NCBI GenBank assembly: GCA_035084275.1
Contig: CM068756.1
Location: forward strand, 14,322,001-14,386,000
From: Hydrolagus colliei
Taxonomy: Eukaryota
Reading direction: 5' to 3'
Length of the DNA stretch: 64,000 nucleotides
A program made the position numbers and the translations under genes. Below, one piece after another: positions 1,635-35,012 of the stretch (positions within the stretch are counted from its first letter, which is position 1; every line of letters begins with the position of its first letter). The notes under the pieces are model-generated. The model made no database searches, was not told the origin of the DNA, and worked only from the letters and a program-made list of their open reading frames with translations.

Positions 1635-1970
1635 CTGCGTTAGGTTTTGGGATGGAATGTTTTGTGTCAGTGTAGGTGGCAATAGCTGCAGACTTCAGGC
1701 TGACGTGGAACACCAGACAAGTATAAACAGACGCTATCTGGACAGACTGTGTGTCTTCAATAGAGCTAGAGACCTTATAGAGTTCCCCAGAGTTCTGCTT
1801 TTCTATGGTTACTGTCTCTTCCACCTTGATTCCTGATGTTGGTGTAATTTCGTTCCCATCTTTATACCATATGAGGGTGAAATCCTTTGGGTAAAACGCG
1901 GTAGTTTCACACACAATTGTCCGATGCTGAGTAGAATTCCTAGAGAAAATCCTCAGTGGAGTTGGGGGAA
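1635..1970 (-). CDS. Gene 1 C1-set Ig exon
   Basis: ttctacag acceptor and G|gtaag donor; 336 nt, phase 1-1. VPPTPLRIF...VCETTAFYPKDFTLIWYKDG...YTCLVFHVSL shows C1-set hallmarks (CxxxxFYP, WxKD, YTCxVxHxxL). Confidence 0.93.
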
Positions 1971-2999
1971 CTGTAGAACAGATAATGGAGGAAAATTATA
2001 TTAAATTTTATCAATCATCTGGAAAAATTCAATTTTGATTCATTTCTTTGCAAGATCCTGATTTCTGAGAGCAAACGGAGGTTTCTTTAGATACACAAAT
2101 ATCACTCGCACAGCTGAATGCCTTCCTCCTACTTTAATTACTTTGTTGTTTAAACATTAATATTCAGTCATAATACTTGTCTTAAATATCATACGACGTA
2201 TAATGATTAGCACACAGAATTGATCGCTGCAAACTCTTGAACAGGGGAGATAGTGGATTCCTGACAGGAATCAGCACACTGTGGTATTCTAGATCAACTG
2301 ATAACATTCCAGCCTCTGAATTAGCGTGGCTTCATGCTCCACATCGGGACTTAGAATTCATATAGTCAACACTGAAACACCCGCTGCAATGCCATTCTTA
2401 GGATGAGAAATCAAATCTGGTTTAATTCTGAATGTTAACATTAAAGATCTCACGGCAAAATGAGAAAAGAGAATACAGGTTCCCTGGCAGCCTGCCCTGT
2501 AATGACACAACTTATTTTTAATGGTCTTCTACCCAATGACTGTTGTGGGACATTTCTGTACATAACTTGGCGGCTGTGTTTGCTCACAAAACTACTCTGT
2601 CTAGTCACTTTACAACATATCATGTGAAGTGCTTTGGGTTGTGTCAGTGGTGTGACCAGGTGCTGTATCGAATGATGGGACCCCCTTGAAAGGTTTTGAT
2701 CAGGTGAAGAAGGAAACAGTGAGTCCGTAACAAGAGTCCATAATTTGAAATCATCATTAAATAAAAGGAGAGGTTGAATTTTGATTTTACTGAGAAGCTG
2801 TTGGTACAAAATACAGTCTGAAGAACATTCCATAACAGCTGTTAAAAGGAATTGTAAAGTCATAGATTCTTTGTCTTCCATATGGATTTTGAATTAATTA
2901 TGCGAATAATATGGATAAATTCTATGATCTTCGTAACATTGTTGTAGAATGGATCGACTTCAAGATCTGCACTGCACTCTTGTGTTTAAATCTCTCCAC

Positions 3000-3390
3000 T
3001 GGTCTACACCCCCCCCCCCCCCCCCCCCCCCTCCCCCCTCCCACCTACATCTCTGATGGCCTCTCTCCTCACAACATTTGCGTTGCCTCCACTCTACTGG
3101 GTCCGGCCTCCTAGTTGTCCCCTAATCCTCCGTTCAACCATCGGCGGCCGTGCTTTCAGCCACTACCCGAAGCTTTAGAACTACCTCTCTCAACCCCTTC
3201 ACCTCAACCCCTTCACCTCAACCCCTTCACCTCAACCCCTTCACCTCAACCCCTTCCTTTCCCATGTGCAGGTCGCGCCTGAAGACCTTCTGTTCGACGG
3301 CGCCTATGGCTTCAGCCTCGAGGCTCCGCCAGTCTGAAGCGCTCTGATTCGCTGCCCGGTATGGAGTGCGCTATAGCAAAGCCAGCTGTT
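3000..3390 (+). repeat. Degenerate L2 3' fragment with poly-C tract and 14-bp tandem repeat (caaccccttcacct x4 plus partial, 3191-3257)
   Basis: Similar to the 3' end of the L2 at 11300-11690. Tandem unit read directly. Confidence 0.65.
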
Positions 3391-3596
3391 GCTTTAACAT
3401 TATTCGATAAGTGTGGTGAGTTGTACTATTTTGTGTTTTAGGTGTGTAGAGGTTGATTCTCACTTAATATACTGTACTCTAAAAACTAGTGAACAAACTA
3501 GTATGAACAAACAATACGAAAAGCTTTAAAGCATTCACTGCATTTATTACTTTCTATGTAATTTTCAGGTGCTTTCACTCTTCACTACACACTCAC

Positions 3597-3917
3597 CCTG
3601 CACAGTTAAACGTGATCCAGGTCCTGTTCCAATTCCTGATCCCTGACGGATCACTGAGCAGCGATAGACTCCAGAGTCCTGTAAACTCACATTCAGGAGC
3701 TGGAAGAAGCCGCTTCCTTTGCCTTTCACACCAAATGTTTTCCTGCTGTCCGCCTGTGTGTCCAAGTGGCCGTCCTCACCCTCCTTCTCCCACTTCACCT
3801 CCACTTCTGAACCGTGTTGAGAGAAGGGGAAGATACAGATGAAATTGATGTCTGACCCTTTGATGACAGTCGTACGTTCGGGGTTTTGACTCACTATGAC
3901 CGAAGAACCTTCAGGGA
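3597..3917 (-). CDS. Gene 1 V-set exon with germline-joined J-like motif (NKp30/SIRP-like)
   Basis: tctgacag acceptor and G|gtgagt donor; 321 nt, phase 1-1. Contains Cys (FIC), Trp (VKW) and DSGVYRC...GTGPGSRLTV. Confidence 0.94.
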
Positions 3918-4072
3918 CTGTCAGAAAAGAAAGTCAATCAATGATACATTAGATGATGCGTCGTGGAGTAAACAGACGAGTAAAAGAGGAAAGGACCGTA
4001 AGTTTGTATGATAAATGGCACATGGAAACAAGCTTTCACATATTCAGAGAGTTACTGAGTTATAGAATATAC

Positions 4073-4124
4073 CTGTTGAAATAAAATTTAAGACAAACAA
4101 GTACAGAAAGACAATGCTCCCCAT
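4073..4124 (-). CDS. Gene 1 leader (signal peptide) exon
   Basis: ATG...MGSIVFLYLFVLNFIST plus G|gtatat; 52 nt, phase 1; homologous to the gene 2 leader. Confidence 0.88.
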
Positions 4125-4129
4125 GTCGG

Positions 4130-4215
4130 AATCTGGCTTTGATGAGCTGTAACACGTGAACGTGAAGTGTTTATTATAGAGTAAGTTGCTGTGACACTGA
4201 CTTCCTGTTTGAAAG
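4130..4215 (-). promoter_or_regulatory. Putative proximal promoter of gene 1
   Basis: Block gctgtgacactgacttcctg (ETS core CAGGAAGT on minus) is conserved upstream of genes 2 and 3 and at the orphan site near 7500. TATAATAAA on minus at 4170-4178. Confidence 0.5.
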
Positions 4216-4249
4216 GGCTTTCTTCAATTAGCCCAAACTGAAGGTGTAT

Positions 4250-4760: not shown

Positions 4761-6353
4761 TTACCGAATGGGAATTTTGAGTTCACAGCATCCTCAGTCT
4801 GAAGTGTAGTTGATGGTCGTGAATACTATTCGGGAGCATCCGCAGTAGTGAAACACGTGTATATTTTGACAGTCTCTGTTTCACCAACAGTGCACAACCT
4901 TGATATTGATATTAGGAGAAGGAATGATCACTCTAATGGAGCTCTAGGCTGAGGAATAGGTCACTTATATGTCATTTTAAGCTGATTGATGTTGAGGGCG
5001 GATTGTTCAATGGAGAGAAGAAGAAATTATTATTTGCTTGATGTTTTCCGATGATCAAAGAGACAGTTATGTCCAAACCAAAATACCCAAATGGCTGATG
5101 CAGAATCCAGCCTGTACAGAGCTGGAGTCTGACCACACATTGAGTATTGCACAGTGATGTAGTCACTGTGACATACAGGGGCTGCCCAAGTGGCAATGCA
5201 GAGGAAACCAATATGGATGATCCCCAGGATTAGAGGAATGTGCTTTGAGAGGTGTTTAAAATTATCAATGGGATTGGGAAGAGTAAATATATATCAATAG
5301 TTTAGGTTATAACAAAACAGCCGAATAAGAACATATAGGTTTAGAGTTGCTTAGCCAATATTAGGACAGATTCTAGGTTTATCTTCACCGCAATTAAAAT
5401 AAAGAATTTAAATAGGTTGGAAGGAAAGTTGGTTGAGGCCACGAGGCCACCTCGTTTAAAACACAGTTTGAGGTTGTGATGGGGGGATGGTCGGGAGGGT
5501 GTTCTCAAAGGATGAGATCAGATACGCCGAAGGGCCTTCTTTAATTCATCCGATTTCAAGATTTTTTTTTGAAAAAGGTGTGTGTTAAACTGACGCTATC
5601 ACTTACAGAACAAAACACCACACGTGGCGAGAATGCATGTCTGTTGTTAAACAAACAGTGAAATACTCGCCACAGTAGGTACAGCTGCTTTACTGCAATA
5701 GGAACAGCGTAATTGATGGTAAAAGTTCAAAACCCGCATTCTATAAATAATCTGAGAGAGCAAGACTCTTGTAATGGAATACCACTTTGACATTTACAAA
5801 TACAGCAGAACGATTGTGGTTTTAATGCCGTGTTGTGTCATATCAGGTGTATTCATAGCGGACACCTGAATATGTATGCACGTAAGCTTCAATGTTTTTT
5901 TACTGCATTCGACTATTGCGCCACATGTTGTTGACCAGGTTTTAAATTAATCCATTCCAAATGTTGTTTCATTCATACTAAAGAGACAGAATAACTAGAG
6001 GAGACGGATTTATACAATATGCTTTTTATTGAAATGCTGATCGAGCATGTTACACAGCAGTTCCTCATATTGTAGTAGCTAACAAGCTAATTGATAATCT
6101 AATAATTCAGTGGTTATCTTTACAGATTGATCAGATTCACAGTGAATACAGTTTAGCAATAAAGTATGGTTATATGTGTATTCTAAGCAATAATTTCCAA
6201 CAAATTTCTTGAGAACGTATTATCTAATAAACTAATAAATGCAATTATATTTGAAACGAGTGAAAATGGAAAAGCAGTACAAGATTAATGTGCAAATTTT
6301 TCAATATAGTGGAAAATTGCATCTAATATAAACCAATATCAATTTCAGATGCA

Positions 6354-6495
6354 TTACTTAGATCTTGGTTTCCTGCAGATAGTGGCGGTTTCTCCATAGT
6401 TTCTCACATGGAGCTCTGCTTACTCTGTATTATTAACGGTAGTCAAATTCAACATCACCTAAAGCCAGCGCCTCATTCTCTGCTCCGTATATCAT
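6354..6495 (-). pseudogene. Degenerate terminal Tyr-motif exon of a deleted receptor gene
   Basis: ttttatag|ATG acceptor, homologous to the gene 3 terminal exon. A +1 T insertion and TAT>TAG destroy the Tyr motif. Conserved AATAAA (minus) at 6025-6030. Confidence 0.7.
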
Positions 6496-7139
6496 CTATA
6501 AAACGTAACGTCACAACAGCAATACATGGTAATCGTAGAACATATTTTATGATGGGAGTACATCCCAGGGCACTGAGAGATTGTTGTATTCACTGTTCTG
6601 AGGATTGCTGTATAAGTAATCATCAGAAAATCCACAAGTTTAAATATTGCAAATAATTAATAAGCAAACTTACAGTTTTATTGAATACTCTGTTAACAAT
6701 TACATGACATCTTGCATTTAAATGATATATTGATGCTGCAAAATAGCATGAGGGGATTATATTTGAAATATTCTTATTTATTGATGATGAACAGTATCTT
6801 TCGATTACTACAACTCGGTTTTCAGATTAAACATCTTCTGAAAGGCAATTAATGAATGTACCTGCTCTTTGCAGTGGCTCGATCCTTTCTGATTTCTGCG
6901 TGGGCCTTTGATAAGAAAGTCAATAAATGAAGAATGCATTTTCGAATATGTTTTGCTTAGAATAAATGAAAAGCGTTAGGAAGCTCACAAGCTACCAGAG
7001 TCTGTTTTTCTAAATATACATATGTATAAAGCTGTCTTCTTGCATCAAACTGAGTTTACTTCAAGGCTAATCTGAACACATTAGCCTTTAAATGCTAACT
7101 AAAGGCTAATTAGCCTCCAACTTAACGTCAACAAGCCGG

Positions 7140-8409: not shown

Positions 8410-11400
8410 TCCTTCTCTACCCTTCTTTCTCTTCGCCCTCCTCGTTTACTGTCCCTGCTCAACCCTCCCACCGCTTCCCTTTGTTCCAGTTTAGGAATTC
8501 TCCGTCGGGCTCACAGTGGTACTCGGCGCTGGCTGTCCAACAGCAGCCACACCTAGTGCCCTGTCCCCCACCATCACCGCCAGCCCCACCGGACACAAAC
8601 CCGGGGGGTCAACCTCTCCTCTCTTATCCAGATCCCCACCCTCCCCGCCGACCATCCCAGCCCCCCCTCACACCCCTCGGCCAACTGCTCTTTCAGCATC
8701 GGCCTCCAAAATGTCCGCTCTGTCTGCAACAAGACCCTGGCCATCAACGATCTCATCCTTGACGAGAAGGTTGACATCATGGCCCTGACAGAGACTTGGA
8801 TCACCCTAGGCGACACTTTCCCCCTCGTTGAAGCCACACCACCCAACTACACATTCCACCATGCCCCTCGACCCAACTGTCGTGGCGGTGGTGTGGCCCT
8901 CATTTCAAAGACATCCCTCGCCCTATCCCCCTATTCCTCCGGTTCCTTCCCCTCTTTTGAACAGCTCACCCTCTCTCACTCCTCCCACAATTCCTTCAAA
9001 ATCCTATTAGTTTATCGCCCCCCCAAACCCTCCCCCACTTTCATTTCAGATTTCTCTTCACGTTTAACCCTCTGTGCTTCCTCTGATCGCCTCATCATTC
9101 TTGGCGACTTCAACATCCATTTCACCCCCTCCTGCCCCATTTCCTCTGAATTTTCCTCTTTACTTTCGTCTTTCAACTTCTCCCTTCACACTAACACTGC
9201 CACCCACACCCACGGCCATCCGCTCCATCTGGTGATCACCCGAGGCCTCAACGTCTCTGGCATCACCATCACCGACAAGGCCATTTCAGACAATTTTTTA
9301 ATCTCTTTCAAAACCTCTATCCCTCCCCCCTCCACCTCCAAACCCACCACCATCTTCTACCAGCCCTGGAAGAAGACTCCCCCTCAAACCTTCACCTCTG
9401 CCCTCGAAAACTCCGACCTCCTCCCACAGTGGCACTCTTTTTGCACTGACCCAGCCTCCACCTCCACCGCCCTCCATAACACCCTCTCCACTACCCTCGA
9501 CACCCTGGCCCCCCTCACCTCCAGAACCGTCTCCCACTCCCGATCATCACCGTGGTACACAACTCACCTCCGTTCCCTCAAAAGCCAAGTGCGAGCAGCT
9601 GAACGCACCTGGCTCAAATCTGTCCTCACGGTCCACCGGCAAATCTGGCTGGACCGCATCAAATTTTACCGCTCCGCCCTAGCCACCGCCAAATCAACCT
9701 TCTACTCCAGGATAATCCTGGAAGTGAAGGACAACCACCGCCTCCTCTTCGCCACCACCAACAAGCTCCTCCGCCCCCCCCCCGTCTCGCTTCGCAGATC
9801 CTTTCCTCAAACGAACGTTGCGAGGAGATTTTGGACTTCCTCGAGTCCAAAATAGAGAATCCGCTCCGCGGTTTCCTCCCCCCACCTTTCCTCCACCTCC
9901 GCAACTCCAGCCGTTATCTCAACCCCCACCCAAACCCCCTTCATACTTTCATTCCCACCTCCCCGTCTTCAATCACTAAAATAATCACCTCCATGAAACC
10001 CACCACGTGTTCATTGGACCCCATCCCCACCCCCCTCCTCCACACCCAGCTCCACCTTCTGACCCCGCTCATTTCTGACACCATCAACCTTTTCCTCTCC
10101 TCAGGCACCGTCCCTACCTCCCTTAAAACAGCCACCATCACCCCTATCCTGAAGAAACCCTCCCTTGATGCATCGCAACCATCAAGCTATCGACCCATCT
10201 CCAATCTCCCGTTTTTATCCAAGGTCCTTAAAAGAGTGGTTGCCTCCCAGCTCCGCTCTTTCCTTTCAACTCACTCACTCCTTGAACCCCTCCAATCAGG
10301 TTTCCGCCCTATCCACAGCACAGAAACTGCCCTGGTTAAGGTTACAAATGACATCCTAACCGCCTGTGACCAGGGCTCCCTCTGCCTCCTCGTCCTCCTT
10401 GACCTGTCTACTGCGTTCGACACAGTCGATCACACCATCCTCCTTCAACGTCTTTCCTCCCATCTCAACCTTCAAGGCACAGTCCTTGACTGGTTCCATT
10501 CCTACCTGACCCACCGCCTACACTTTGTGTCTTCCAACGGTTTCTCCTCAAACCCCCGCACAGTTTCTCACGGCGTCCCTCAGGGCTCTGTCCTAGGCCC
10601 CCTCCTTTTCACCCTTTACACGCTCCCTCTGCGCGATGCCATCCGCAAACATGGGGTAAATTTCCACATGTATGCGGACGACACCCAGCTGTACCTTTCT
10701 GCCTCATCCCTCAACCCCCATACCATCGATGTTCTGACAGCATGTCTGTCCGACATTGAGTCCTGGACGAGGGGCAACTTCCTCCAATTAAACGTGAGTA
10801 AGACCGAGGCCCTCCTGATTGGCTCAAGCCAGCGCCTCCGCACATCGGGCGCTGCCAGCCTCAACATCCAAGGCTGCACTCTCCACCTCACAAAGCCAAT
10901 CAGGAACGTCGGCATCATGTTCGATCAAAAACTCTACTTCCTCCCCAACATCCGTGCCTTGACCGGCACCGCTTACTTCCACCTGCGCAACATTGCCAGG
11001 CTCTGCAATTATCTTACCCCCCACGCTGCCGAAACACTCGTGCACGCGTACATCACCTCAAGGTTGGACTGTGGAAACTCTGTCCTCGTCGGCCTCCCCA
11101 GTTCCTCCATTCACAGGCTGCAGGTCATCCAAAACTCTGCAGCCCATGTATTATCCCGCACCCGCCTTCGCGACCACATAACCCCCACCCTCGCCCGTCT
11201 CCACTGGCTCCCCATCCTCCAGAGGATCGAGTTCAAGATCCTCGTCCTCACCTTCAAGGCCTTACATGGTCTTGCCCCGCCCTACTTAACCAATTTACTC
11301 TCCCCCTACAAGCCCACCCAGACCCTCCGCTCAGCAGGACTTGGCCTGCTCCAAGCCCCCCACCCGAACCGCCCCACCATCGGAGGCCGGGCCTTCAGTT

Positions 11401-11690
11401 TCTCCGCTCCCACTCTGTGGAATTCCATCCCCCAATCCCTCCGTCTCGTTTCTTCCCTTTCCTCTTTCAAGGCCGGTTTGAAGACTTTCCTCTTCGACCG
11501 TGCCTTTGTTCCACCCCGAATTTTTCGACCTCCCCTACGTGTTTCACCCCTTCCCAAACACTCCCCTCCCAGCTCGGGTCACAAGGCGCCTTGTGACCCG
11601 AGCCTTGGGACGTCCTCCCGACAGCGCCTTGTGACGTCCTCCCGACGTGAAAGGCGCTTTATAAGTGTAATTTGTTGTTGTTGTTTTTGT
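8410..11690 (+). mobile_element. L2-clade LINE, near-complete ORF2 (APE + RT), frameshifted near the poly-C at about 9775-9850
   Basis: APE motifs (ALTETW, GDFN) in 8779-9855. RT motifs ([32 protein letters not shown]) in 9831-11693. Ends in a (ttg)n tail. Confidence 0.95.
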
Positions 11691-12529
11691 TAATGCTGAT
11701 CAATGTTGAGCTGAAGAGAAACGGGGATTGTTCAATGGGGAGAAGAAGTTGTTATTTTCTTACTGTTGTCCGAATATCAAAGAGTCCAAACGAAAACACT
11801 CCAATGGCTGAAGCTGAATCCAACCTGTGACTGTGCTCTGGTCTGAACATTCCTCGAGTATTGCCCAGCAAGAAAGAGAGCAAGGCTCTTGCAATGGAAT
11901 TATACTTTGACATTTACAAATACAGAAGAACGATTGGGGTTTTAATGCTGAGTTGTTTCATGTCAGGTACATTCAAAGCAGAAGCGTGAATATCTATGCA
12001 TGCAAACTTCTATTTTTTTTACTGCATTCGGCTATTGTGCCACATATTGTTGACCATCTTTTAAGTTAGCCCATATCAAGCGTTGTTTTATGGATACTAG
12101 AGACAGAATAACTAGAGGAGACTGGTTCATACAATATGCTTTTTATTGAAATGCTGATTGAGCATGCTACACAGCAGTTCCTAATATTGTAGTAGAGTTA
12201 TTCTATATTCTAATAATTCTGTGGTTACATTTATGGATTGATCAGATTCACAGTAAATATGCTTTAGCAATTAATTATGGTTATATGTGTATTGTAAACA
12301 ATTATTTCCAAGAAATTTCCTGAAGACATATTATGTAAATATTAATAAATGTGATTGAAACAGGTGAAAGCGGAAGAGAATGATTAATATGCACATTTTT
12401 CACTATAGTGGAAAACTACATTTAATAATAACATAATAAACAATAATAATCCTTACATTTGATATAGAGCTTTCCACATCTTATTGATGGTCTCAAAGCG
12501 CGTATATATACTGTGCACCATTATCAGTT

Positions 12530-12676
12530 TCAGTGCCTGTTGCATTTCTTAGATCTTGGTTCCCTGCAGATAGCTGCTGCTTCTCCTCTGTGGTTTCTCA
12601 CATCCTCTGTATTCTTAACGGACGTCAACTTCAACGCAACATATGCCACCACCTTACTCTCAGCTCCGAGCATCAT
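12530..12676 (-). pseudogene. Third tandem Tyr-motif exon downstream of gene 2, acceptor mutated
   Basis: Reads MMLGAESKVVAYVALKL...; the AG acceptor seen in paralogues is CG here (12678-12677). Conserved AATAAA (minus) at 12142-12147. Confidence 0.6.
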
Positions 12677-13039
12677 CGATAAAACATAACACCACAACAA
12701 CAACATATTGTATTTGTAGAACATCTCTCATGTTGGCAGTAGATCCCAGGTTGCTGATAGATTGCGGTCTTCACTGTTCTGATGATTTGCTATATATTTA
12801 TAGTTGAATGCTTACTACTGTACTTGGCTAAGCTGTATCTGAAGCATAAGAATTCCATGTTATGATGTTTGATTTATTTTATCCGATTCTAGCGAAGAAA
12901 TTGATTGATCAAATCAAAATCAAGACATTGTGTTCCGTAACTCTTGTTTATTGAAAATCACAAAACCACTTCACAATGTTACAAACTATCAGAACCTAGT
13001 TTGAGATTTGAATTGGTATATTTTGTTCTAGAGATGTAA

Positions 13040-14080: not shown

Positions 14081-14245
14081 TTATGCGATTCCTGATTCCA
14101 TGGCAGTGACAGCTTTGTAATTTCCGATATTTACCTCTGCATACTCTGAATTCTTGTCGCGGCGTTTAGCTTTTCCTGTTTTTTGGTTGCGAGGGAAATC
14201 CAGATCAGCGTAGGTCAGCTTGTTAGCGGCTGCTCCTTGCTTGGT
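14081..14245 (-). CDS. Gene 2 cytoplasmic exon B (ITIM LTYADL and SEYAEV) to stop
   Basis: cttttgcag acceptor, phase 0. TKQGAAANKLTYADLDF...NSEYAEVNIGNYKAVTAMESGIA*. Confidence 0.82.
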   Translation of the reverse strand, partial: TKQGAAANKLTYADLDFPRNQKTGKAKRRDKNSEYAEVNIGNYKAVTAMESGIA

Positions 14246-15073
14246 CTGCAAAAGAAAAATGGTTGGGATTGTCTTTTTGCTGGTTCCATAAATACACATA
14301 AATGTACATAGAACGGCACGGAAACTGAGCAGCTGGTGTTTATAATTCACACAACATCCATCCTTACCTATTTTCGTCTGTTTTCTCAAATTTCTTCTCA
14401 TGTATGCATTAAGTTTTATGTTAATAATATTGTTACTTTATTGTGAACCCATCAACCCCATGGCCAATTGATAAATTGGTTTCAAACTGCGATATCCAGC
14501 TGCAGATTTAAGGCTTGCCGATCTCAGCGATGAGCTGACAGCTGCTTTCATGTGTTGTTGCAGATTAGTTAATGTTGCAAATCCTAATTGCGCTATGAGA
14601 AATTAACATCTCAGGACATCTGGATCGGAACACATGTAATTCTCTTTAAATTAATTGCTGAATTGTTGATTCTTATATAAAGATATAATCTTAGGAATTG
14701 ATAGCCCAGAAGGCCAGTCTGCTGGTTGTACACAGGCTGCCTATTTGAAGGAATAATGTATTGAGTCCCATTTATTCGGCTTTCACCAACGCTCCTTTAA
14801 ACTGATCCATTTGGGATGTCCTCTCGACGTGAAAGACACTATATAAATGTAAGTTTTTATTGATTGATTTTATAAATACCCTTTATCTTTAGTTTAAAAA
14901 ATGATATTGGTTAAATGCTGGAAGGTTGAACACGTTTGACAACTAAATGGAGCATCAAAACATGTTAGAAGATTCGGTGGATGGAGGGTGGGGGGAACAG
15001 AATCGGGGATAAAGTATCAAATGATGCCTATTTACCAAACCTGTTTAATACAGGTTTAATACATGTTGTTTAC

Positions 15074-15184
15074 CTGGGCATATACGGTCCTCTCTTCCTG
15101 GTGTTTAGGTCTTGGAATTTTATTGGAACTTCTCAAATCCAATGTTACATAAGCCACGTTGTCACCCACTGCTCCCTCCCGCGT
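15074..15184 (-). CDS. Gene 2 cytoplasmic exon A (ITIM VAYVTL and TVYAQ[V])
   Basis: gttttacag acceptor; 111 nt to CAG|gtaaac. TREGAVGDNVAYVTLDL...ERTVYAQ. Read-through gives VNNMY* with the stop at 15056-15058. Confidence 0.85.
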
Positions 15185-15892: not shown

Positions 15893-15936
15893 CCGATGTT
15901 CAAGATTGCCCAATCGAGTTGGGTTTCCCTTTGATC
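15893..15936 (-). CDS. Gene 2 short cytoplasmic exon
   Basis: catatttag acceptor and CGG|gtaagt donor; 44 nt, phase 1 to 0 (GSKGNPTRLGNLEHR). Links the TM exon to exon A in frame. Confidence 0.72.
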
Positions 15937-20211: not shown

Positions 20212-20355
20212 TTCTGACTCTGGCTCTGATGAGCTGTAACACATGAACCTACAGTATTAGATATAGAGTACGTAGCTGTGACACTGATTTCCTGTTTCTT
20301 TGGGTTCATGAAATGTCGCTGTTGTTGTTGTTGATGTGATTTGAAATCACACGTC
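20212..20355 (-). promoter_or_regulatory. Putative promoter and 5'UTR of gene 2
   Basis: gctgtgacactgatttcctg (GGAA core on minus) and palindrome TGTGATTTGAAATCACA at 20335-20351. Confidence 0.5.
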
Positions 20356-22389: not shown

Positions 22390-23760
22390 CCTTCATCACT
22401 CCTATCTTTAAAAAGCCCTGCCTGACCTCATTCTTGCTCTGATTCTACCATCCCATCTACGGTCTCCCTTTCCTTTCCAAAGTCCAGGAACAAGTGATTC
22501 ACTCTTTCCTTTCTTGCTGCTCCTTTCACAAATCCCTGCAACTGGGTTTCCATGCTGCCCACAGTGCAGAGACAGCCCTGTTCCAAGTGACAAATGGCAT
22601 TCTGTCCATGTGACCGAAGCTCCATCTGCCTTCTTGTACACCTTGACCTCTCTGCTGCCTTTCACACCGTTGACCACACTATAGTTATCGACCACAACTC
22701 CTACCACCTCAATCTCACATTTCTATCCTTGAATGGTTCAGATGGTTCACACAATCTCCTCTTTCCCTCCTGAAATGGTATCTGCTCCAGCCGCGCATCA
22801 TTATGTGCGGCATTCCTCATGGCTGTGTCTTTGGTCCCCATGTCTTCACTATCTTTGTCTATATGCTGCCTCTTGGTGTCACCATTCTCAGACATAGGGT
22901 CAACATCCACATCTATGTGGATGACACCCAATTCTGCCGCTCTGCTTCCACCCTTCACTCTATCAGGATCACTGCTTTCCTGACAGAACATCTGGTAGAT
23001 ATCAAGTCCTGGATGAGAGGTAACTTTCTTCAGTTAAACATGAAGAATATGGAGGCTCCCCTGATTGGCTCCCTTCAGCACATTCACAACTCAGGCACTG
23101 ACAGCAGCACCATCCATGGATGCACACGCAATCTTATTAAGCTAATCCGGAACCTTGGCATCTTCCTTGAATCTATGCTACGGCCTTTTCTGTCTTCCAC
23201 CACCTTCACAACATCACCCAGGTCTGCTACTGTCTCACACAACAGGCTGCCAAAATCATAATATATGCATACATAACACCCAAGCTTGACTATGCAAACA
23301 CATTGCTTGTCAACATCCCCAAATCCTCCCTCCACAGGCTGCAAGATCATCGCAATATCTGGCGCTCATGTCCTCTCATGCATGAGGATCTATGACCATA
23401 TCACCTCTACACTCACCCAAATCCAGTGCTTCTTATCACACAAGGGATATATAATATCATTGTCCGCAGCTTCAAAGCCCTCCAGGGCCTTCTCCTCCAT
23501 ACCTCTGTGACATCCTAACCCCATACAAACTTGCCAATATCATCCACTCAATGGGCTCCGGCCTACTTCATGTCCCCCGCTTGCCCACCCCATCATTTAT
23601 GGGTGGCCCTTTAGCTATGCTGCCCACAAACTCTGAAACTCCACCATCTTTTGCTTCCATTGTGGTCAAATTCAAGACCCTTGTTTTTGACTGTGCTTTT
23701 GATCACCCTGCTTCCTACCTGCCATCCCCAACCCCAACCCCTGCTTGGTTCCAAAACACT
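22390..23760 (+). mobile_element. Old L2 LINE fragment
   Basis: Degenerate RT (GIPHGCVFGP, YVDDTQ) in broken frames. Confidence 0.8.
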
Positions 23761-24088: not shown

Positions 24089-25542
24089 CATAAGAACATA
24101 AGAAATAGAAGCAGGAGTAAGGCCATTCAGCCCACAGAGCCTGCCCCACCATTCAATCATGGCTGATATTCTACTCTAACTACAGCTGCCTGCTTTATCC
24201 CCATACCACTTAATCGCTTTATAAATGAGAATTCTATCTAACTCAGTCTTGAATATGTTCAAGGACTGAGCATCAACAGCCCTTTTGGGTAAAGAATTCC
24301 ATACATTCACCAGCCTCTGAGTGAAGAAGCTTTTTCTCAACTCAGTGTGAAAGGGCTGACCCCTAACTTTAAGACTGTGAGCCCTGGTTTTAGATTCTCC
24401 AACCAAGGGAAACAATCTCCCATTATCTACTTTGTCCCCCCCCTTAATAATCTTATAGTTTCTATAAGATTCCCTCTAATTTTTCTATATTCCAGAGAAT
24501 ATAGGCCCAAATTAATCATCATAACTCATCCTCCTCATTCCAGGTACTAACCTAGTAAACCTACGCTGCACTCCTGCTGCAAATACATCCTTCCTTAAAT
24601 AAGAGACCAAAACTGCATAGTATTCCAGATGTGGTCTCACCAGTGCCCTATACAGCTGCAGCAAGACTTCTCTACTCTTATACTCTAACCCTTTCATAAT
24701 GAAAGCTCACATACCGTTAGCCTTCCTAATTGTCTGCTGCACCTGCATACTAACTTTCTGTGTTTGATGTACAGGACACCCAAGTCCCTCTGCATGCTAA
24801 CACTTTCCAATCTCTCCCCCTCTAAAAAATAATCTGCTCTGAAGTTTTTGCGATTTAGGTGGATGACTTCGCACTTCCCTACCTTATACTTCATCTGCCA
24901 ACTACCTGCCCACTCACCTACCCTATCTATATCTCGCTAAATTTTTTGAATGTCATCCTTGCTATTAAGACTTCCTCCTAGTTTCATATCATCAGCAAAT
25001 TTAGTTATAGTAAGCTCGATGTGCTTATCTAGATCATTGATGTATATGGTAAATAGCTGAGGCCCAAGGACTGGTCCTTGTGGCACTCCACTAGTCACAT
25101 CCGCCAATCTGAGAAAGACCCGTTTATCCCTACTCTTTGTTTCTTACCCGTTAACCATTCCCTAATCCATGTTAATATGTTCCCCCCAATTCCGTAAGCC
25201 CCTATCTTTTGGATCAACCTTTTTTGCGGCACCTTATCGAATGCCTTCTGGAAGTCCAAATAGACTACATCCACTGATTCACCCCTATCTAGTTTACTTG
25301 AAATATCCTCAAAAAATTCAATGAGATTTGTCAAACATGACTTCCCTTTTGTAAAGCAATGTTGAGCTGGCCTAATTATATCGCGCTCCCCTAAATACCC
25401 CACTAAAACATCCTTAATCAAGGATTCTAACATTTGTTGCTATCACTGATGTCAGACTAACTGGCCTATAGTTCCCCATCTTTTCCTTTCCACCCTTTTT
25501 CAATATTGATGTGACATTTTCTATCTTCCAATCCATGGAATC
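24089..25542 (-). mobile_element. CR1 LINE 3' portion with TSD tttgatt
   Basis: RT fragments ([18 protein letters not shown]). 3' tail cataagaacataagaaatag. tttgatt at 24082-24088 and 25543-25549. Confidence 0.9.
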
Positions 25543-26499: not shown

Positions 26500-28025
26500 A
26501 GTCATTCAGCCACCTCTACCCCATTCTCCACTACCTCCCCACTACCTTTCCCCCAGGATCCATCTTACTCCCAGCACCCACTATATATCTTCCACCCTAT
26601 CTCCCCCCACCACCTTCTCTGCTCTCCTCCGCAAAATGAAACACACTACCTGCTCCATTGACCCCATCTCCACTTCTCTCTTCATCTCCCAGCTTCATCT
26701 CTTAGCCTCCTCCTAACTGAAGTCATCAACCTCTCCCTATCTACTCTCCCCACCCCTCTAAAACCTGCTGTCATCACATCCATCTTAAAAAAAACCTTCT
26801 CGCAACTCATCCCTACTCTAAGCTATCGCCTCATCTCCATCTTCCCATTCCTCTCCAAAGCTCTGGAATAAGTAATTGCTTCCCAGCTTCGCTCCTTTCT
26901 CACCCACCAATCCCTCCTCCAACACCTTCAATCTGGTTTCTGTGCTACTCACAGCATGGAGATAGCACAGGTGAAAGTCTCTAATGACCAGGTCTCTATC
27001 TGCCTCCTTGTCCTCCTTGACCTCTCCATCATCTTCAACACTGTCAAACATTCCATCCTCCTATCCCCCCTCGTCAATCTCCGAAGAACTGTGCTTGCCT
27101 GGTTTGACTCCTACCTCTCTCATCCCATACACTTTGTCACCACTAATGGTTTCTCTTCCAGCCCCCCCACCCCACTGTCATCTGTGGGGTCCCCCAGGGT
27201 CTGTCCTTGGCCCCTTACTTTTCAACATCCAAATGCTCCCACGTGGTGATATCATCTGCAGAGGTGGGGTTAACTTCCACATGTATGTGGATGACACCCA
27301 ACTCTACCCCTCTGCCTGTACCTTCGACTCCAGGACTACCACTGTCTTGACAGACTGTCTGTCAGACATCAAGTCCTTGATGAGAGCTAACTTTCTACGG
27401 TTGAATGTCAACAAGACAAATGCCCAGTTAATCAGTAGATTAGCTCGCGCCAGCACCTTCCTGCATCATTAACCTCCATGGTTGCACACTTAACCTTTCC
27501 AGGCCAGTCAGGAACCCAGATGTCTTGTTCAATCCTCAACTGTCTTACCTCCCCCCACATTCCAAGCAATAACTCATTCTACCTTTCCCCATCTCTGCAA
27601 AATTCCCCAAGTCTGCAATCCCTTAATTCCCTCCACAACCTCGCTCCACCCTGCATTTGTGACCTCGTATACCCTTACCAATGAGCCCGCCCCCTCCACT
27701 CTTAGCAGGCTCTGGCCTGCTCCACATCCCCGTCCCACCTTCCCATCTTTGGCAGGCAAGTCTTTACCCACTCTCCTTCAACCTCTGGAACTCCATCCTG
27801 CAGTCGCTCTGCCTCGTTCCCTCCCTGGTCTCCTTCAATTCTTGCCTTAAGACACTCCTCTTTGATGTGCCTATTGGTAACTCCTAATCCCCCCTTCCCA
27901 CCTCCCCTCTCCCCCCACCCACCCCCATCCACAGCTTGGATCTCAAGCAATGGCTGTACAGCGCCTTGGGACGTCCTCCTGATGTGATAGAGGACCGGTG
28001 TACACAGGTGTAATTTTGTTGTTGT
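26500..28025 (+). mobile_element. Old L2 LINE fragment
   Basis: [18 protein letters not shown] motifs and a ttgttg tail. Confidence 0.8.
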
Positions 28026-28590: not shown

Positions 28591-29557
28591 GGAGTGATGT
28601 TGTCACAGAGAGTGTTGCGGCTAGAGTGGGTGTTCTGTAAGATTATATCAGATATACCAATGGGCCTTCTTCAGTTTAGACAATTAAAACTTTTTTTTAA
28701 GTTTGCGTTATATGGACACTATCACCACAGCTACAACAGAAGCTTACATAGTAAGAATGGAAATCTGTTGTTACATCAACAACAAAATATATTCCGCAGG
28801 ATGAGGCTTTAAAGGTGTTACTTTACTGCAATCGGAACAGCGTAATTGATGGAAAATGTTCATAACCCGCAGTCCATATATTATCTGAGAGCGTGAGACT
28901 CTTATAAAGGAATTATCGTTTGACATTTACAAAAACAGCAGAACGGTTGGGGGTTTAACGCTGAGTTGTTTCATGTCAGATCTATTTTTATCGGATATGT
29001 GAATATTTCAACACCCACGCTTCAAATTTTTTTTACTACTTGACTATTGTGCAACATATTGTTGAGCAACTTTTAAGTCAGCCCTTACTGAGTGTTGCTT
29101 CATTAATACTGAAGAGATAGAGGGACACGATGAGACTGGTTTATACAACTTGCGTTTTATTGAAAGGCTGATTGTTCATGAGACACAGCAGTTCCTCTTG
29201 TTGCAATAGCTAACGAGCTACTTTTAATCAAATAATTCAGTAGTTACCTTTAAGGATTGATCAGATTTACCGTGAATACATATAGGCAATTAAGCATTGC
29301 ATTGCACACAGCATACGTGTACTGTAAGCAACATTTTCCAAGAAATTTCTGGAGAGCGTATAATGTAATGTACAAATAAATGCAATTATGGTTGAAACAG
29401 GTAAATAGAACAGCAGCACAGGACTAATGTTCACGATATTCACTATGTACATATAATATACAACAATATCAGTATCTATCTCTGATGCATTCTTAGATCT
29501 TGGTTCCCTGAAGATAACGGCGGCTTCTTCACTGTGGTTTCTCGCATGGAGATCTGC

Positions 29558-29632
29558 TTACTCTGTATTCTTAACGGGAGTCAAATTCAACATGACATAA
29601 GCCGCCGCCTCATTTTCTACTTCGAGCATCAT
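29558..29632 (-). CDS. Gene 3 terminal cytoplasmic exon (MMLEVENEAAAYVMLNLTPVKNTE*)
   Basis: ttttatag acceptor; Tyr at codon 12 as in gene 2 exons A and B. Conserved AATAAA (minus) at 29156-29161. Confidence 0.62.
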   Translation of the reverse strand: MMLEVENEAAAYVMLNLTPVKNTE

Positions 29633-30329
29633 CTATAAAACATAATGCACAATAACAAAACAGTTTATTTGTGGAACATCCTTTATGTCGAGACTACATC
29701 CCAGGGCCCTGATAGATTGTTGCCTTCACTGTTCTCGAGATTGCTGTGTATGTAATCTTTGGAAAACTCATAAATTTAAAACATTGCAAATATTTAATAA
29801 GTAAACTTACAGTTTTATTGAAAACTCTGTTAAAAATGACACGACACTTCATATTTGAATGATACATTAAATCCGAGCATTTGCGCGTAGAGAATATATT
29901 TTAAATATTCCTATATATTTATGGTGAACAGTATTTTTCCATTGCAACAACCCTGAGTTCAGATTAAATATGTGCTGAAGAACAATTAATGAAGGCACTG
30001 GCTCTTCGCAATGGCACAATCCCTTCTGGTTTATGTGTGGGCCTTTGAAAGAAATTCAATAAATGAAGTACTGTATACACTTTTGGTTATGTATCGCACA
30101 GCCCAAATGTAAAGGATTTAGAAGCTCACAAGCTGCCTGTCTGTTTTTCTATAAAAAAAACTAAACTCCATCCCAGAGCCCCTCGAATTCTGCCTTTCCC
30201 GCTACTGCTTAAAAATCTTTGATGAAACAATCAGGAGAATAGATAGTTGAGGGTATAAAATATAAAACCAATAGGTAAAACAGTATAACTTTATATAAAT
30301 CGGCAGTGACACAGTTGGAATAATGTATC

Positions 30330-30600
30330 CAGGATTGTTTATTTTGCTTAGGAAATTTACCAGAATGATAACGGGGAAGATACATTTGCCATATGAGCAC
30401 AGACTGGATGATGTAGAACGTTTCGCCTTGGAACACAGGCGGTTGAGTGTGGACCTGATAGAGATCTATAAAATCATGAGTTGCGTTGATAGAGTCGATG
30501 GAGAGTTTATTTCAAGTGGAAAGTGAGCTAGCAAACATGCAAAAGTGTTGAAACTCTTTAACACACAACGAGTAGTTAGGTTATACAATCCATCTCGGGA
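30330..30600 (+). mobile_element. CR1 LINE 3' fragment
   Basis: LPYEHRL...LEHRRLSVDLIEIYKIM resembles the CR1 ORF2 C-terminus. Confidence 0.65.
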
Positions 30601-31425
30601 TTGCACAACCTATAGGGGTTGCTGAAGTATAGGGGAGAGGTAGTTAATCTAAATCTATCTCAAGATGTATCTTTTTGACCTCAGTTAAAGTCATTTTTCT
30701 TATCCCCACTACCCTATCCCACCACCAGCTGAGGAGCCTGGCCAGTAGTATAAAGCGCTTTGGGATTTCCTCCAGACTTGAATCGCGCTATATAAATGTA
30801 TTTCTGTGCTGTACTGTTAAATGTCGCCATAATTTACAATAACCTCTTAGAATTTTACACCTGCATTTCTATTGATACCTGATACTATGCTCCGTTTATA
30901 TAAATAATCTGCATTTGGGTTTATAGGGCACAATTTCCAAGTTGGCTAAAGAGACAAAAATGAATCATTGAAGAGATATCAAGACTGGTAGATTGGACAG
31001 ACAGATTATATATTAAACGTAGAAAAGTGCGGTTGTATATTTGGGGATTTGCAATCGGGTCTGGCAGCGGGCTGCGGGTTCAGTGGCCCAGGCATCATAT
31101 GTACTTTACATTATGAAACATTATCTACACATAGTTTGTAAAACAAATTAATTGTAGCGCTTTGTGCAAAAAAAGACAGATTAGTGGGATGTGGACTATT
31201 TAAAGATTAATGAGAGACACTGTAGGGTGAATGGTCTTCTGTTCTGTACACTTCTATGGTTGTACCACAGTAGATTTCAGACATGCGTTGCATGGAAATT
31301 TCTGATTAATCATGAAGCTAAATATATGTAGAGGGACATTCTGTGAAGACATTGGCCTTTGTGAATTGATCGCATCATATTAATCATTGGAACTGCTTTG
31401 CACGATTTTCCTCAGATTTTCTCAC

Positions 31426-31454
31426 CTTGTCCCCACCCCCCCAGACTATCAAAC
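31426..31454 (-). CDS. Candidate short cytoplasmic exon of gene 3
   Basis: aacag acceptor and AAG|gtgag donor; 29 nt, phase 1 to 0 (GLIVWGGGDK) would join TM to the terminal exon in frame. The upstream intron is only 70 nt and an alternative AG lies 7 nt upstream. Confidence 0.35.
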
Positions 31455-31524
31455 CTGTTAACTGAATTGTTGTATTCAATTATATATTTACATTCATATT
31501 AACTAAAATAGGAATGAATCTTAC

Positions 31525-31638
31525 CGTTCCTTTTTTTCAAATTGCATTGATTCCCAATGATGATCAAAAGCAGCAGAAATACCAGGCCTCCCCCTACACA
31601 TCCAGCGATCAGTAGGTAGTCAGTCTGAGAGTAATTCT
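31525..31638 (-). CDS. Gene 3 transmembrane exon
   Basis: ttcttgcag acceptor and G|gtaag donor; 114 nt. YLLIAGCVGGGLVFLLLLIIIG then NQCNLKKRN; same length as the gene 2 TM exon. Confidence 0.9.
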
Positions 31639-31972
31639 CTGCAAGAACATCATAAACTGAGTGTCAGTGATCCCAGCAATGTATTTGTTTTTCAGTAATA
31701 GCAATCATGTAGAACACAGGAATTTAACATATACATTTGATAATCTCACTTCTAATTGAACAGAATCCAAGAGTTTGAAGGTTGATGAGTTTTTTTAAGA
31801 GTCTTCTAGGGGACTAGTATGAATATGTGAATCTGATTTGATATATATTTCTATGGAGTATATGGACAGAAAATGATATGATTCTCCATTGTCTTCAGTA
31901 CAAATAAAAATGAAATATTTTCCAATGATAATCTAGCTAACAGCAAGTCATTGTAGGATATCTGTAAATTAC

Positions 31973-32266
31973 CTGTGATGGGTTTCGAAATGATGTAGAC
32001 GCCAATCACTGGAGTGGTGAGGGCGACGTGCTTTGCCACACAGGTATAAACAACCCCGCTCTGTACAGGTTGTGTGTCTTCCATATCAACTTCGAAAAGT
32101 CCATCTGATTTTCTCTTTTTTGTCAGATTTGTCCCAGTAATAATTTCAATGTCGTCTTTATACCAAGTGAGCGTTATATCCTCCGGATAAAACCCAGCCG
32201 TTTTACACACAAGAGTCTGAGGTGTCAACGAATCTCTGGGGAATATCTTTGGCGAAGTCGGGGGGA
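31973..32266 (-). CDS. Gene 3 C1-set Ig exon
   Basis: cctacag acceptor and G|gtaat donor; 294 nt. LVCKTAGFYPEDITLTWYKD...DGLFEV...YTCVAKHVAL. Confidence 0.93.
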
Positions 32267-32689
32267 CTGTAGGACAGACAATGGAGGAGAATTGCATTAC
32301 TTTTGATCAGTTGGAATGTACAACTTTATTCCCATTTGAATTGTATATGAAATCTTTCCCTGCAACAGTATAAGAGGAAAAGTCCTCCGAGACTCTAACC
32401 ATGTGAGGGCGCAATTCAAATGTTGTTAGAACAAGGAATCTGGATTATAACGGAAAGAGACTGATCCTTTTTTTTTAAACAATGTTTAGGGCAGCAAATG
32501 ATAAAAGATGCAGGAGTTCCAGCCGTTATTCAGCCGAGTAATAGGTGGATGAAAGGACTTAGGTACGATGATAAAATGGGTAAACATGGTGTATATTTGA
32601 TGGATTTGGGAAGAGTGGCAGGTAATTTTATTGAGCTGTCAACGAATGCCAAAGTATTGCAGGATGCATAATTTTGATAGAAAACAATA

Positions 32690-33110
32690 ACAACAACAAA
32701 ATTGCACTTGTATCAGCGCTTTTCACATTGGGAGGACGTCCCAAAGCGCTGAACAACCTGGTCGGGACCCGAACAGAGGGGGGAGGGTCGGGGGAGGGGG
32801 AAGAGTTAGTGGAGTGGCTGAAGGCGCGGTTGAAGAGGAAGGTCTTGAGACCGGCCTTGAAGGAGGAAAGGGAGGAAGCAAGGTGGAGCGGCTGCTGGAT
32901 AGATTTCCACAGTGCGGGAGCAGAGAGGCTGGAAGCCCGGCCGCCGATGGTTGGGCGGTTAGGGCGATGGACGCGGAGCAAGCCTGAGTCTGCTGAACGG
33001 AGGGTGTGGGCGGCTGATAGGGAGACAGTAGGTCAGAGATAGGTGGGGGCAAGGCCGTGAATGGCCTTGAAAGTGAGGACGAGGATCTTGAATACGATCT
33101 TGAATTAGAC
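32690..33110 (-). mobile_element. L2 LINE 3' fragment in gene 3 V-C1 intron
   Basis: RPTIGGRASSLSAPALW...FKAGLKTFLF matches the L2 ORF2 C-terminus. Confidence 0.85.
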
Positions 33111-33679
33111 GGGTAAAAATACCAAGGTATCCAACTGTCAAATTTTGGCTGAACCTATTAGATGTGAATAGTTCTACTCACATGCAGTTCAGTGAAATTA
33201 TGAAATTATGGAATCCACTCCGGTAAGTGGCTTTAAACGCCAATTAAAGTTTGATATTCAAAATGGAGAGATAGGGGTTTGAAAGAGGATTGAAAGTGGC
33301 GCGTGAAATAGAATTAAATATTCTGCCACCATTCTTGAGCAATAATAATCTACATGACTATGAACCATAGAATAGTATCCTGGAGAAAACTGGAAATTGC
33401 ATTAAAATTAGAGAGAAAGCAAAATCTCTCCATTCACACCAAGATTTATTCTGTTCTGATTTTTTTTTAATTTCGTAAGTTTCCAACCAATTTTGAATGA
33501 TTAGAGTAGAGCATTCAAAATAACTTAAGGACTGATTGTGGGACATTGTTTCACGTAGATATTTGAGGGCATCTCATATTGTCTACCTGTTTTTAAACAT
33601 TTACGTTTCATATAAGTTAGGAAATTGTCAACATCTGGACCAAATAGGGGGAACCTCAAGCCACAGAGCACTCTGTCAC

Positions 33680-33992
33680 AATAATAATAATCCTAGCATT
33701 TGATATAACCCTTTTCTCGTCTATTAAACATCTCAAAGCGCTTCATAGAATATACCATAAAGTGAATTGTCTATATATTTGTGGATGAATCGCAGCAACC
33801 AATTGTGCATTGCGGTATCCCGCAAACATTTGTGGATTGAAATCACCAATTTATTCAAGTTTTTTTTTAGGGATTATTATTAGTCGTGTGGAGTAAGGAA
33901 ACTTGCCAAAGGTTTCGCCCTGTCTGGATTCGAACATAAGGGTCTCACGCTTGTAAGGCGAGCGCTCTATCCACTGAGCTACAGGTCTCCAG
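33680..33992 (-). mobile_element. tRNA-derived SINE
   Basis: Minus strand reads gtagctcagtggatagagcg...gttcgaatccagacagggcgaaacc; same family as 769-1130. Confidence 0.85.
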
Positions 33993-34461
33993 CATGATAT
34001 TGGATTGTCAGTGTACACAGTGATCTTCATGTATTGATGTGGAACAATCTGAATCAATGCGTTCAGGACAGAATTAAATATCAGATAGAATTAAATATCA
34101 TATAGATATTTATGATATTAAATATCATATAAATATCATATAGATTAAATATCATATGATAGCGGTAGGCGGGATACATGCATTTGAAAGCATTGCTTAA
34201 CGCAGCTATAAAGGAACCCAAATTCCCACTTTGCTGAGTGGTATAAACCCGCCGGCTCACATCAGCATAGTAACAAATGGGCAGAATTGTACTAGAAAAA
34301 CATTCTACTGATCAATGTGTTTCGGGTTAAAATCAAATCCGTTCCCGTGTACTGTGCAATCATAGCCTTTTGTGAGAGTTGAAAATTAACCAAATAATTT
34401 ACCCGTAACAATGTCAAATTGTCCCCAATACATTCCCCGTTACTACTCTGTCCACACTTAC

Positions 34462-34761
34462 CATGTACAGTTAAACTTGTTCCAGTTCCATTTCCTGCTA
34501 GTTTCCCCTGATGGATTATTGCACAGTAATAGACTCCGGCGTCGTTGAATTTTACATTTAGAAGTTGGAACGTTTTGCCATCAAATATTTTCCTGTTGTC
34601 AGGTCTTTGATGTAAATAGTCACTCTCTCCTTGCTTCCACCAGTAAAATATTTTATTTGCTTCCTCTTGAAGAGTCTTGCAGGCGAAGGTAATGTTTTCA
34701 CCTTGTATTCCTGTTATTTCTGCAGGATATTGAATCACTTTCATTGTTGCACCACCTGTAA
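34462..34761 (-). CDS. Gene 3 V-set exon with J-like motif
   Basis: ttctcag acceptor and G|gtaagt donor; 300 nt. FAC...YWWKQG...DAGVYYC...GNGTGTSLTV. Confidence 0.93.
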
Positions 34762-34972
34762 CTGAGAAAATAACACACATCGATAACAAGCGATTGTGGA
34801 ATCTACAATTGATTATTATAGAGTGGAAGAAAGGTGAGAAAATAGGTGTAGGGAAGGAGAGAGAGAGAAGGCAGAAGAGAGAGGAAGAACGATGGATGCA
34901 TTCACTTAACATATTTCGAAATTCTTCATCGCTATCGATCTGTATTTAAATGCACTGTTGTGAAACACTTAC

Positions 34973-35012
34973 CTGTGAAGATAATCCCCATTAGAGAAAG
35001 ATAGGGGGACAT
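34973..35012 (-). CDS. Gene 3 leader exon
   Basis: MSPYLSLMGIIFT plus G|gtaagt; 40 nt, phase 1. Confidence 0.78.

Follow-up and report, generated by a model that had tools for sequence, protein, structure and literature searches.

To which receptor family do germline genes belong that carry a joined VJ exon, with variable (V) and joining (J) segments in one piece, next to a C1-set exon of the immunoglobulin (Ig) type? This layout, when it does not rearrange, is the one sought as a relic of the antigen-receptor precursor. It occurs in a 64-kb stretch of the Hydrolagus colliei genome (contig CM068756.1, positions 14,322,001 to 14,386,000; hereafter the window, numbered from its first base). The window contains no N and carries three V-C1 receptor genes, named here A, B and C, all on the minus strand (Table 1). 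They are probably members of a chondrichthyan, SIRP-like, non-rearranging VJ-C1 multigene family of type I receptors, with the SIRPs as closest known relatives. The system is thus a shark-lineage cousin of a known receptor family and not a new kind of system.

All 16 exons (three in gene A, seven in B and six in C) are open, with AG/GT sites throughout. The junctions between leader, V, C1 and transmembrane exons are all phase 1 and canonical. Callorhinchus homologues match the V exons with tblastn E values of 1e-41 to 1e-48, which places the gene family far beyond chance, and the proteins of all three genes contain a V-set and a C1-set domain above the Pfam gathering score. A preliminary description of this DNA had noticed three V-C1-transmembrane receptor genes, an observation that is real but incomplete. 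The two peptides it quoted are present exactly (GTGPGSRLTV at 3601-3630, GNGTGTSLTV at 34466-34495). Its shared plan of leader, V, C1, transmembrane and tail exons holds in 3/3 genes for leader, V and C1 with phase-1 junctions, but not for the transmembrane and tail exons of gene A, which are outside the window. It also left out a 44-nt cytoplasmic exon (15893-15936 in gene B). In a self-comparison, region 354-4210 of gene A is collinear with 17056-20297 of gene B; therefore the transmembrane and tail exons of gene A fall before base 1. Gene A is a close paralogue of gene B, and in V and C1 trees the two are nearest each other and sister to a pair from C. milii.

Gene B (14081-20211) is complete. 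Its seven exons, with AG/GT sites, form a 1128-nt open reading frame (ORF) encoding 375 amino acids, with an uncharged transmembrane segment and four tyrosine motifs. The 44-nt exon is required, because without it the exons carrying the immunoreceptor tyrosine-based inhibitory motifs (ITIMs) are out of frame. Exons and introns alike run collinear between gene B and the Callorhinchus milii LOC103185896 locus, at ~75-78% identity. Over its whole length, from membrane to C-terminus, the tail of gene B can be aligned with that of human SIRP-alpha, and the four tyrosines are in register (Smith-Waterman score 96, z = 11.5 against shuffles). The CD33 tail gives z = 6.5, and those of CEACAM1, PD-1 and KIR2DL1 about 3 or less. 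The SIRP-alpha-like tail proposed in the preliminary description is therefore well founded for gene B, at z = 11.5 versus at most 6.5 for the CD33, CEACAM1, PD-1 and KIR tails. Its view that every gene is wired to ITIM signalling is borne out for one gene of three, gene B (VAYVTL, TVYAQ, LTYADL and SEYAEV), as ITIM exons are found in the window only in B.

A J-like G strand lies inside the V exon of genes A, B and C, and the GxG...L.V columns are invariant or near-invariant across the family. Gene B supplies the third J-like motif of the window, the terminal GTGPGSSLTV of its V exon (19699-19764). Scans for recombination signal sequences (RSSs) with 12- and 23-bp spacers gave 1 and 2 matches versus 0.8 expected, none of them adjoining a V exon. 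With V and J in one exon and RSSs at chance level, the genes are therefore non-rearranging VJ-C1 genes, and the germline-joined layout described earlier stands.

The V domain had been called NKp30-like. The human NKp30 string quoted in support is exact when compared with PDB 3pv6_B, and aligns without gaps to YRCSVIRQGSGIGTGPGSRLTV with 12/22 identities (counted from the sequences). For NKp30, a family profile scores 23.8 bits over residues 71-109. Over the whole domain, the family V profile gives 32.6 bits to NKp30, almost all of it from the F-G strands, 32.4 to T cell receptor (TCR)-alpha V, 28.4 to SIRP-alpha D1, 23.5 to Ig lambda V and 13.4 to B7H6 V. In a maximum-likelihood tree, for which as for the C1 tree the references were human only, the family V domains form one clade (87/96) whose sister group is not resolved. 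The likeness to NKp30 thus holds for the F-G strands but not for the whole domain. Judged by sequence comparison, the V domain is a generic VJ-type domain with a local, not domain-wide, resemblance to NKp30. An exhaustive HMMER run of the V profile against 1.84 billion representatives yielded giant multi-Ig proteins in its top 150 and was uninformative on the nearest V relatives. PDB profile searches were swamped by multi-domain Ig chains, and a single V sequence gave weak generic matches, with NKp30 outside the top 60.

The C1 domain is a genuine C1-set domain, as first described, according to Pfam and to its matches with known C1 proteins: the C1 sequence alone matches Ig-mu constant domains, TAPBPR, IgA, SIRP-gamma and SIRP-alpha, and the beta chain of class II molecules of the major histocompatibility complex (MHC). 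The family C1 profile gives 52.8 bits to Ig lambda C, 50.3 to B7H6 C, 47.8 to SIRP-alpha D3 and 47.5 to HLA-DR beta-2. In the C1 tree, SIRP D2 and B7H6 C join the family clade (94/92) at 98/84; the Ig/TCR and MHC/beta-2-microglobulin domains form separate groups. An AlphaFold model of the gene B V-C1 region, built from a 26-sequence family alignment, has a mean predicted local distance difference test score of 82.9. Over its full length, Foldseek matches this model best to Fab light chains and TCR-beta chains, with TM-scores of ~0.4; such low values would be expected where the angle between the two modelled domains differs.

Two homologue searches retrieved ~85 proteins (43 in the first, 61 in a profile search), all chondrichthyan, in keeping with the expanded cartilaginous-fish family proposed earlier; the searches rest on shared words, so that distant bony-vertebrate relatives could have escaped. 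Relatives occur in Callorhinchus, Heptranchias, Heterodontus, Scyliorhinus, Mustelus, Mobula, Narcine, Pristis, Hemitrygon and Hypanus, and the best matches are C. milii proteins at ~71% identity. The 10-kb flanks of the relatives' loci contain family members only. A separate search with residues 17-122 of the C. milii protein P0024 returned 18 candidates, all close C. milii relatives. The genes are already in public annotations under inconsistent names, as the preliminary description had foreseen. Automatic labels include SIRP-alpha-like, SIRP-beta-like, tapasin-related-like, NCR3-like, NCR3 ligand 1-like, Ig lambda-like and TCR beta-like, as well as MHC class II-like, PD-L1-like and CD276 homolog. 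The C. milii gene models at MU249845.1:15220083-15245628 look inconsistent. P0001 (489 amino acids) has two V-C1 units in series and no transmembrane segment. P0002 and P0024, the latter named NCR3-like, are V-transmembrane-tail models that skip a C1 exon present in the DNA. Some or all of these three models may be prediction artefacts and not real isoforms.

Most family members have the V-C1 architecture, and conservation of the C1 exon extends from chimaeras to rays. Behind this module the relatives differ. An uncharged transmembrane segment with ITIMs is found in 26/85, an uncharged one without ITIM in 17/85, and one charged by Arg or Lys, with a short tail, in about 12 of the 85, mostly with the Arg in a conserved R...IIVD-type helix. 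The coexistence of ITIM, charged and ITIM-less forms is the pattern of a paired inhibitory and activating receptor family. Within the 64-kb window itself, no charged, short-tailed or tail-less paired form was found. In SIRP-beta the charged transmembrane residue is a Lys, whereas the charged members here mostly use Arg.

It is the combination of a VJ-type V domain, a C1 domain of the SIRP/B7H6 type, a SIRP-alpha-type tail and paired forms that makes the SIRPs the closest known family. They too have a non-rearranging VJ-type V domain followed by a C1-set domain and a type I transmembrane segment. Like SIRP-alpha, gene B has four tail tyrosines that form two ITIM pairs, with matching spacing. 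At the family level, both are split into ITIM, charged-transmembrane and tail-less forms. The family C1 domain groups with SIRP D2, and SIRP-alpha-like is NCBI's commonest name for the relatives. A chimera of an NKp30 head and a SIRP tail, as first suggested, is not needed, because SIRP itself has a VJ-type V domain, C1 domains and such a tail, and the C1 domain groups with SIRP D2. A SIRP-like family with a single C1 domain would be the simpler reading. The earlier interpretation was largely right in spirit, but a chondrichthyan family of SIRP-like paired receptors with one C1 domain describes the genes better than an NKp30/SIRP chimera does.

A member of this family would start with a signal peptide, followed by a single VJ-type V domain and a single C1-set domain, and would continue through a stalk with transmembrane segment into a cytoplasmic tail. 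Gene B would encode an inhibitory leukocyte receptor whose V domain may bind a cell-surface or pathogen ligand. By analogy with established ITIM biology, Src-family kinases would phosphorylate the four tyrosines of its tail (two ITIM pairs, one per exon), and phosphatases of the SHP-1/SHP-2 type would dock there and damp leukocyte activation. Relatives with a charged transmembrane segment would pair with adaptors carrying immunoreceptor tyrosine-based activation motifs. Expression, splicing, ligand binding, phosphatase recruitment and true orthology with the SIRPs are inferences and not demonstrations here. SIRP-type paired receptors are known mainly from tetrapods. If the family indeed spans chimaeras, sharks and rays, SIRP-like ITIM signalling would reach back to the base of the jawed vertebrates. 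Once confirmed, the family would provide candidate inhibitory and activating leukocyte receptors for sharks, and a warning that SIRP-, NCR3-, B7H6-, Ig-lambda-, TCR-beta- and MHC class II-like names denote one family.

Several points weigh against SIRP kinship of functional genes. Window genes and most relatives have one C1 domain, versus two in tetrapod SIRPs. By score, SIRP D1 is no nearer to the V domain than NKp30 and TCR-alpha V are (28 bits versus 32 for each of the latter). Approximately unbiased tests reject neither SIRP D3 (p = 0.33) nor Ig light-chain C (p = 0.067) as partner of the C1 clade. Among the reference domains and tails, only human NKp30, the SIRP-alpha and SIRP-gamma ectodomains and B7H6 were checked against the PDB. 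In the searches made, the family is known only from cartilaginous fish, unlike the SIRPs. Finally, comparison of genes A and B gives a dN/dS ratio of ~1.0 for V and 0.84 for C1, so that one copy may be drifting, and the C1 domain of gene B is without the conserved FYP, again a possible sign of drift.

One rival would make the window genes the holocephalan NCR3 (NKp30) family, already described as the shark NCR3 family, with the C1 domain as an optional or ancestral addition and NKp30 proper as a V-only product. We think this unlikely. The resemblance is real: both have a single-exon VJ-type V domain with a GxGxGxxLxV G strand, the F-G strands are 12/22 identical to human NKp30 in a gapless alignment, the profile finds NKp30 residues 71-109, and C. 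milii offers V-only models (P0024 and P0002 skip the C1 exon) of which P0024 is labelled NCR3-like. Flajnik is said to have noted multiple NKp30 genes in elephant shark in 2012, and Kinlein reportedly distinguished eight NCR3 subtypes in nurse shark in 2021; some genes of the present family may have been counted earlier as elephant shark NKp30. However, over the complete V domain NKp30 scores the same as TCR-alpha V, and the V tree does not single out NKp30 as sister. NKp30 has no C domain, whereas the C1 exon is present in genes A, B and C and is conserved from chimaeras to rays. Mammalian NKp30 has a charged transmembrane segment and no ITIM, whereas that segment is uncharged in genes B and C and the tail of B is SIRP-like.

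In elasmobranchs, genomic location would also speak against this NCR3 assignment. The supplementary gene lists of PMC10751288 place the NCR3-labelled genes of sawfish on chromosome 34, flanked by ddah2 and aif1, and those of white shark next to AIF1, PRRC2A and DDAH2. The sawfish family member P0202, by contrast, is at 44.8 Mb of CM019867.1, a 53.95-Mb record. This record is shorter than sawfish chromosome 12, which has genes beyond 55.6 Mb, and the accession order suggests about chromosome 17. A catshark member is on LR744038.1 (198.8 Mb), whereas the gene list of the catshark MHC chromosome 13 ends at 163.4 Mb. The family names are absent from the examined parts of the MHC chromosome gene lists (PMC10751288). 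Judging from record sizes and accession order, and for elasmobranchs only, family members therefore appear to be on other chromosomes than the MHC NCR3 block and unlinked to it.

A further possibility is that the window family is the surviving cartilaginous-fish form of an ancestral non-rearranging VJ-C1 membrane receptor, in which duplication of C1 led to tetrapod SIRPs, and its loss or skipping to NKp30-type receptors. This scenario is doubtful. If true, it would tie innate paired receptors to the V-C1 module of antigen receptors through a living lineage.

The state of the individual copies bears on whether they are functional. Between genes A and B, exons are 85-89% identical and introns ~78%. 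Of the 23 amino acid differences between their V exons, 15 lie within the first 27 residues, and strands C to G are nearly identical (counted from the sequences). The dS of the V exon, 0.12, looks low against a nucleotide difference of ~21% for the V exon with its flanking introns. Clustered differences and low dS suggest gene conversion or a conserved binding face. Relaxed constraint may nevertheless act on gene A or gene B.

Gene C (29558-35027) is a member of a second subfamily and groups with Callorhinchus P0008 in the V and C1 trees. ITIM-like motifs were sought but not found in the visible part of gene A and downstream of gene C, where the tail exon proved to be fused and truncated. Relative to P0008, gene C lacks the part of the tail that separates the first tyrosine motif from the last, and in the last motif TAA stands in place of the tyrosine codon. 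The tail ends with ...AAYVMLNLTPVKNTE-stop and has no canonical ITIM; a degenerate AAYVML alone is left. Exon fusion and a stop have cost gene C its canonical ITIMs, and the gene would be either tail-less like SIRP-gamma or decaying.

Degenerate tail units of the C type are found between genes A and B (T1), downstream of gene B (T2) and near the window end (T4). Since T4 is collinear with the 3' part of gene C, it is probably the 3' end, now degenerate, of a fourth gene with its 5' exons past base 64000. A C1-like tblastn match nearby (63207-63344, E = 0.21) was rejected as chance; it sits in sequence homologous to a gene C intron. In 3/4 C-type tail exons (6357-6443, 29492-29575 and 62412-62495), a TAA falls exactly at the tyrosine codon of the last ITIM (NTE-stop-AEL). 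This stop is therefore older than their duplication, and the truncated tail was copied repeatedly. The 3' half of the C1 exon is duplicated in gene B, where 17752-18045 copies 18059-18346 at 73.6% identity, but not in gene A; the duplication can be viewed as a failed step toward the second C1 domain that tetrapod SIRPs carry. Because degenerate tail copies and a stop-bearing half-copy of C1 are present, the locus is part of a tandem array evolving by birth and death.

The same observations could mean that most of the window copies are pseudogenes in decay, set in repeat-rich DNA, with functional relatives elsewhere only. The A/B dN/dS of ~1, the FYP lost from the C1 domain of gene B, the fused and truncated tail and weak donor of gene C, three degenerate tail relics, a C1 pseudo-fragment, and LINE and retroelement insertions all around would fit such decay. 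We nevertheless find it improbable. All 16 exons are open with AG/GT sites, and gene B keeps a 375-codon frame over seven exons. Exons of A and B are better conserved than their introns, and dN/dS is ~0.4-0.5 between subfamilies. Ratios near 1 are common among young immune-receptor paralogues.

That the genes encode B7H6-like (NCR3LG1-like) B7 ligands and not receptors is very unlikely: the V-C1-transmembrane layout with phase-1 exons is shared, many ray and shark relatives are named NCR3LG1-like, and the C domains are similar (50.3 bits, grouped in the C1 tree), but the V profile gives only 13.4 bits to B7H6 V, which lacks the GxGxGxxLxV J motif near-invariant in the family, and ITIM pairs in the tails and charged-transmembrane partners are features of receptors.

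Besides the SIRP, NKp30 and B7H6 families, two further known systems resemble the window genes. Like UrIg and UrIg2, they have a non-rearranging VJ exon followed by C1 in cartilaginous fish, and the UrIg2 chain 9dmx_A is the second-ranked PDB match of the family C1 profile. UrIg2 was solved as V-C1-C2-C3, forms antibody-like dimers, is reported from elasmobranchs only and is linked to the MHC or to the antigen-receptor complex (PMC12227049). In contrast, the window genes have a single C1 followed by a transmembrane segment and a signalling tail, and are also present in holocephalans. With Ig light chains and TCR chains they share the V-C1 module, and these are their best full-length Foldseek matches; they differ in having V and J in one germline exon, no RSS and an ITIM tail. 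No published description of a V-C1-ITIM family was found in the literature searched, a scope to which key shark NCR3 papers do not belong.

Table 1 Receptor exons, tail units and mobile elements of the window
Feature	Positions	Strand	Remarks
Gene A, leader exon	4073-4124	-	MGSIVFLYLFVLNFIST; phase 1 donor; 70% identity to the leader of homologue P0002
Gene A, VJ-type V exon	3597-3917	-	Ends GTGPGSRLTVQ; Pfam V-set
Gene A, C1-set exon	1635-1970	-	Pfam C1-set; transmembrane exon and tail beyond window start
Gene B, leader exon	20160-20211	-	
Gene B, VJ-type V exon	19695-20015	-	Ends GTGPGSSLTVC; Pfam V-set
Gene B, C1-set exon	18214-18534	-	GCNP in place of family FYP; Pfam C1-set
Gene B, relic of C1 exon 3' half	17917-18045	-	In-frame stop; in the C1-transmembrane intron
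Gene B, stalk and transmembrane exon	16665-16778	-	Uncharged
Gene B, 44-nt cytoplasmic exon	15893-15936	-	SKGNPTRLGNLEHR; phase 1 to 0
Gene B, cytoplasmic exon	15074-15184	-	VAYVTL (ITIM) and TVYAQ
Gene B, final coding exon	14081-14245	-	LTYADL and SEYAEV (ITIMs), stop codon
Gene C, leader exon	34973-35027	-	MVASDMSPYLSLMGIIFT
Gene C, VJ-type V exon	34462-34761	-	Ends GNGTGTSLTVH; Pfam V-set
Gene C, C1-set exon	31973-32266	-	Pfam C1-set
Gene C, stalk and transmembrane exon	31525-31638	-	Uncharged
Gene C, 44-nt cytoplasmic exon	29999-30042	-	Weak donor GTGCCT
Gene C, fused, truncated last exon	29558-29632	-	MMLEVENEAAAYVMLNLTPVKNTE-stop; TAA at tyrosine codon of last ITIM
Tail unit T1 (orphan, C-type)	5497-7012	-	Small exon intact (6859-6912); last exon frameshifted
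Tail unit T2 (orphan, C-type)	11875-12800	-	Acceptor lost; 12-nt deletion
Tail unit T4	61746-63813	-	Collinear with gene C 28863-30960; Tyr-to-His change, shifted small exon
Long interspersed nuclear element (LINE)-type retrotransposon	8557-11690	+	Endonuclease/exonuclease/phosphatase-domain ORF, then reverse transcriptase ORF
Inverted repeat pair	24091-25538; 37387-38640	+; -	89-92% identical; reverse-transcriptase-like motifs FADD..., YLDFQKAFD by eye
Retrovirus-like long terminal repeat (LTR) element pol, two inverted copies	44847-48370; 55693-57900	-; +	Reverse transcriptase, RNase H, integrase; weak match to murine leukaemia virus integrase C-terminus
Long open frames (357, 181, 208 amino acids)	49462-50532; 51348-53089	-; -	No Pfam match

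Mobile elements surround the receptor genes. The LINE lies between tail units T1 and T2, and related fragments are found at 22531-23371, 26636-27425, 39328-39985 and 59709-60583. Within the inverted repeat pair, the single frame tested (24179-24475) had no Pfam match. The two LTR pol copies are 95.5% identical over ~2.1 kb, and their flanks (43615-44236 and 54741-55362) are inverted and 98.7% identical. The long open frames at 49462-50532 and 51348-53089 are probably parts of unclassified mobile elements, because segment 50176-50510 recurs, inverted, at 55374-55693.

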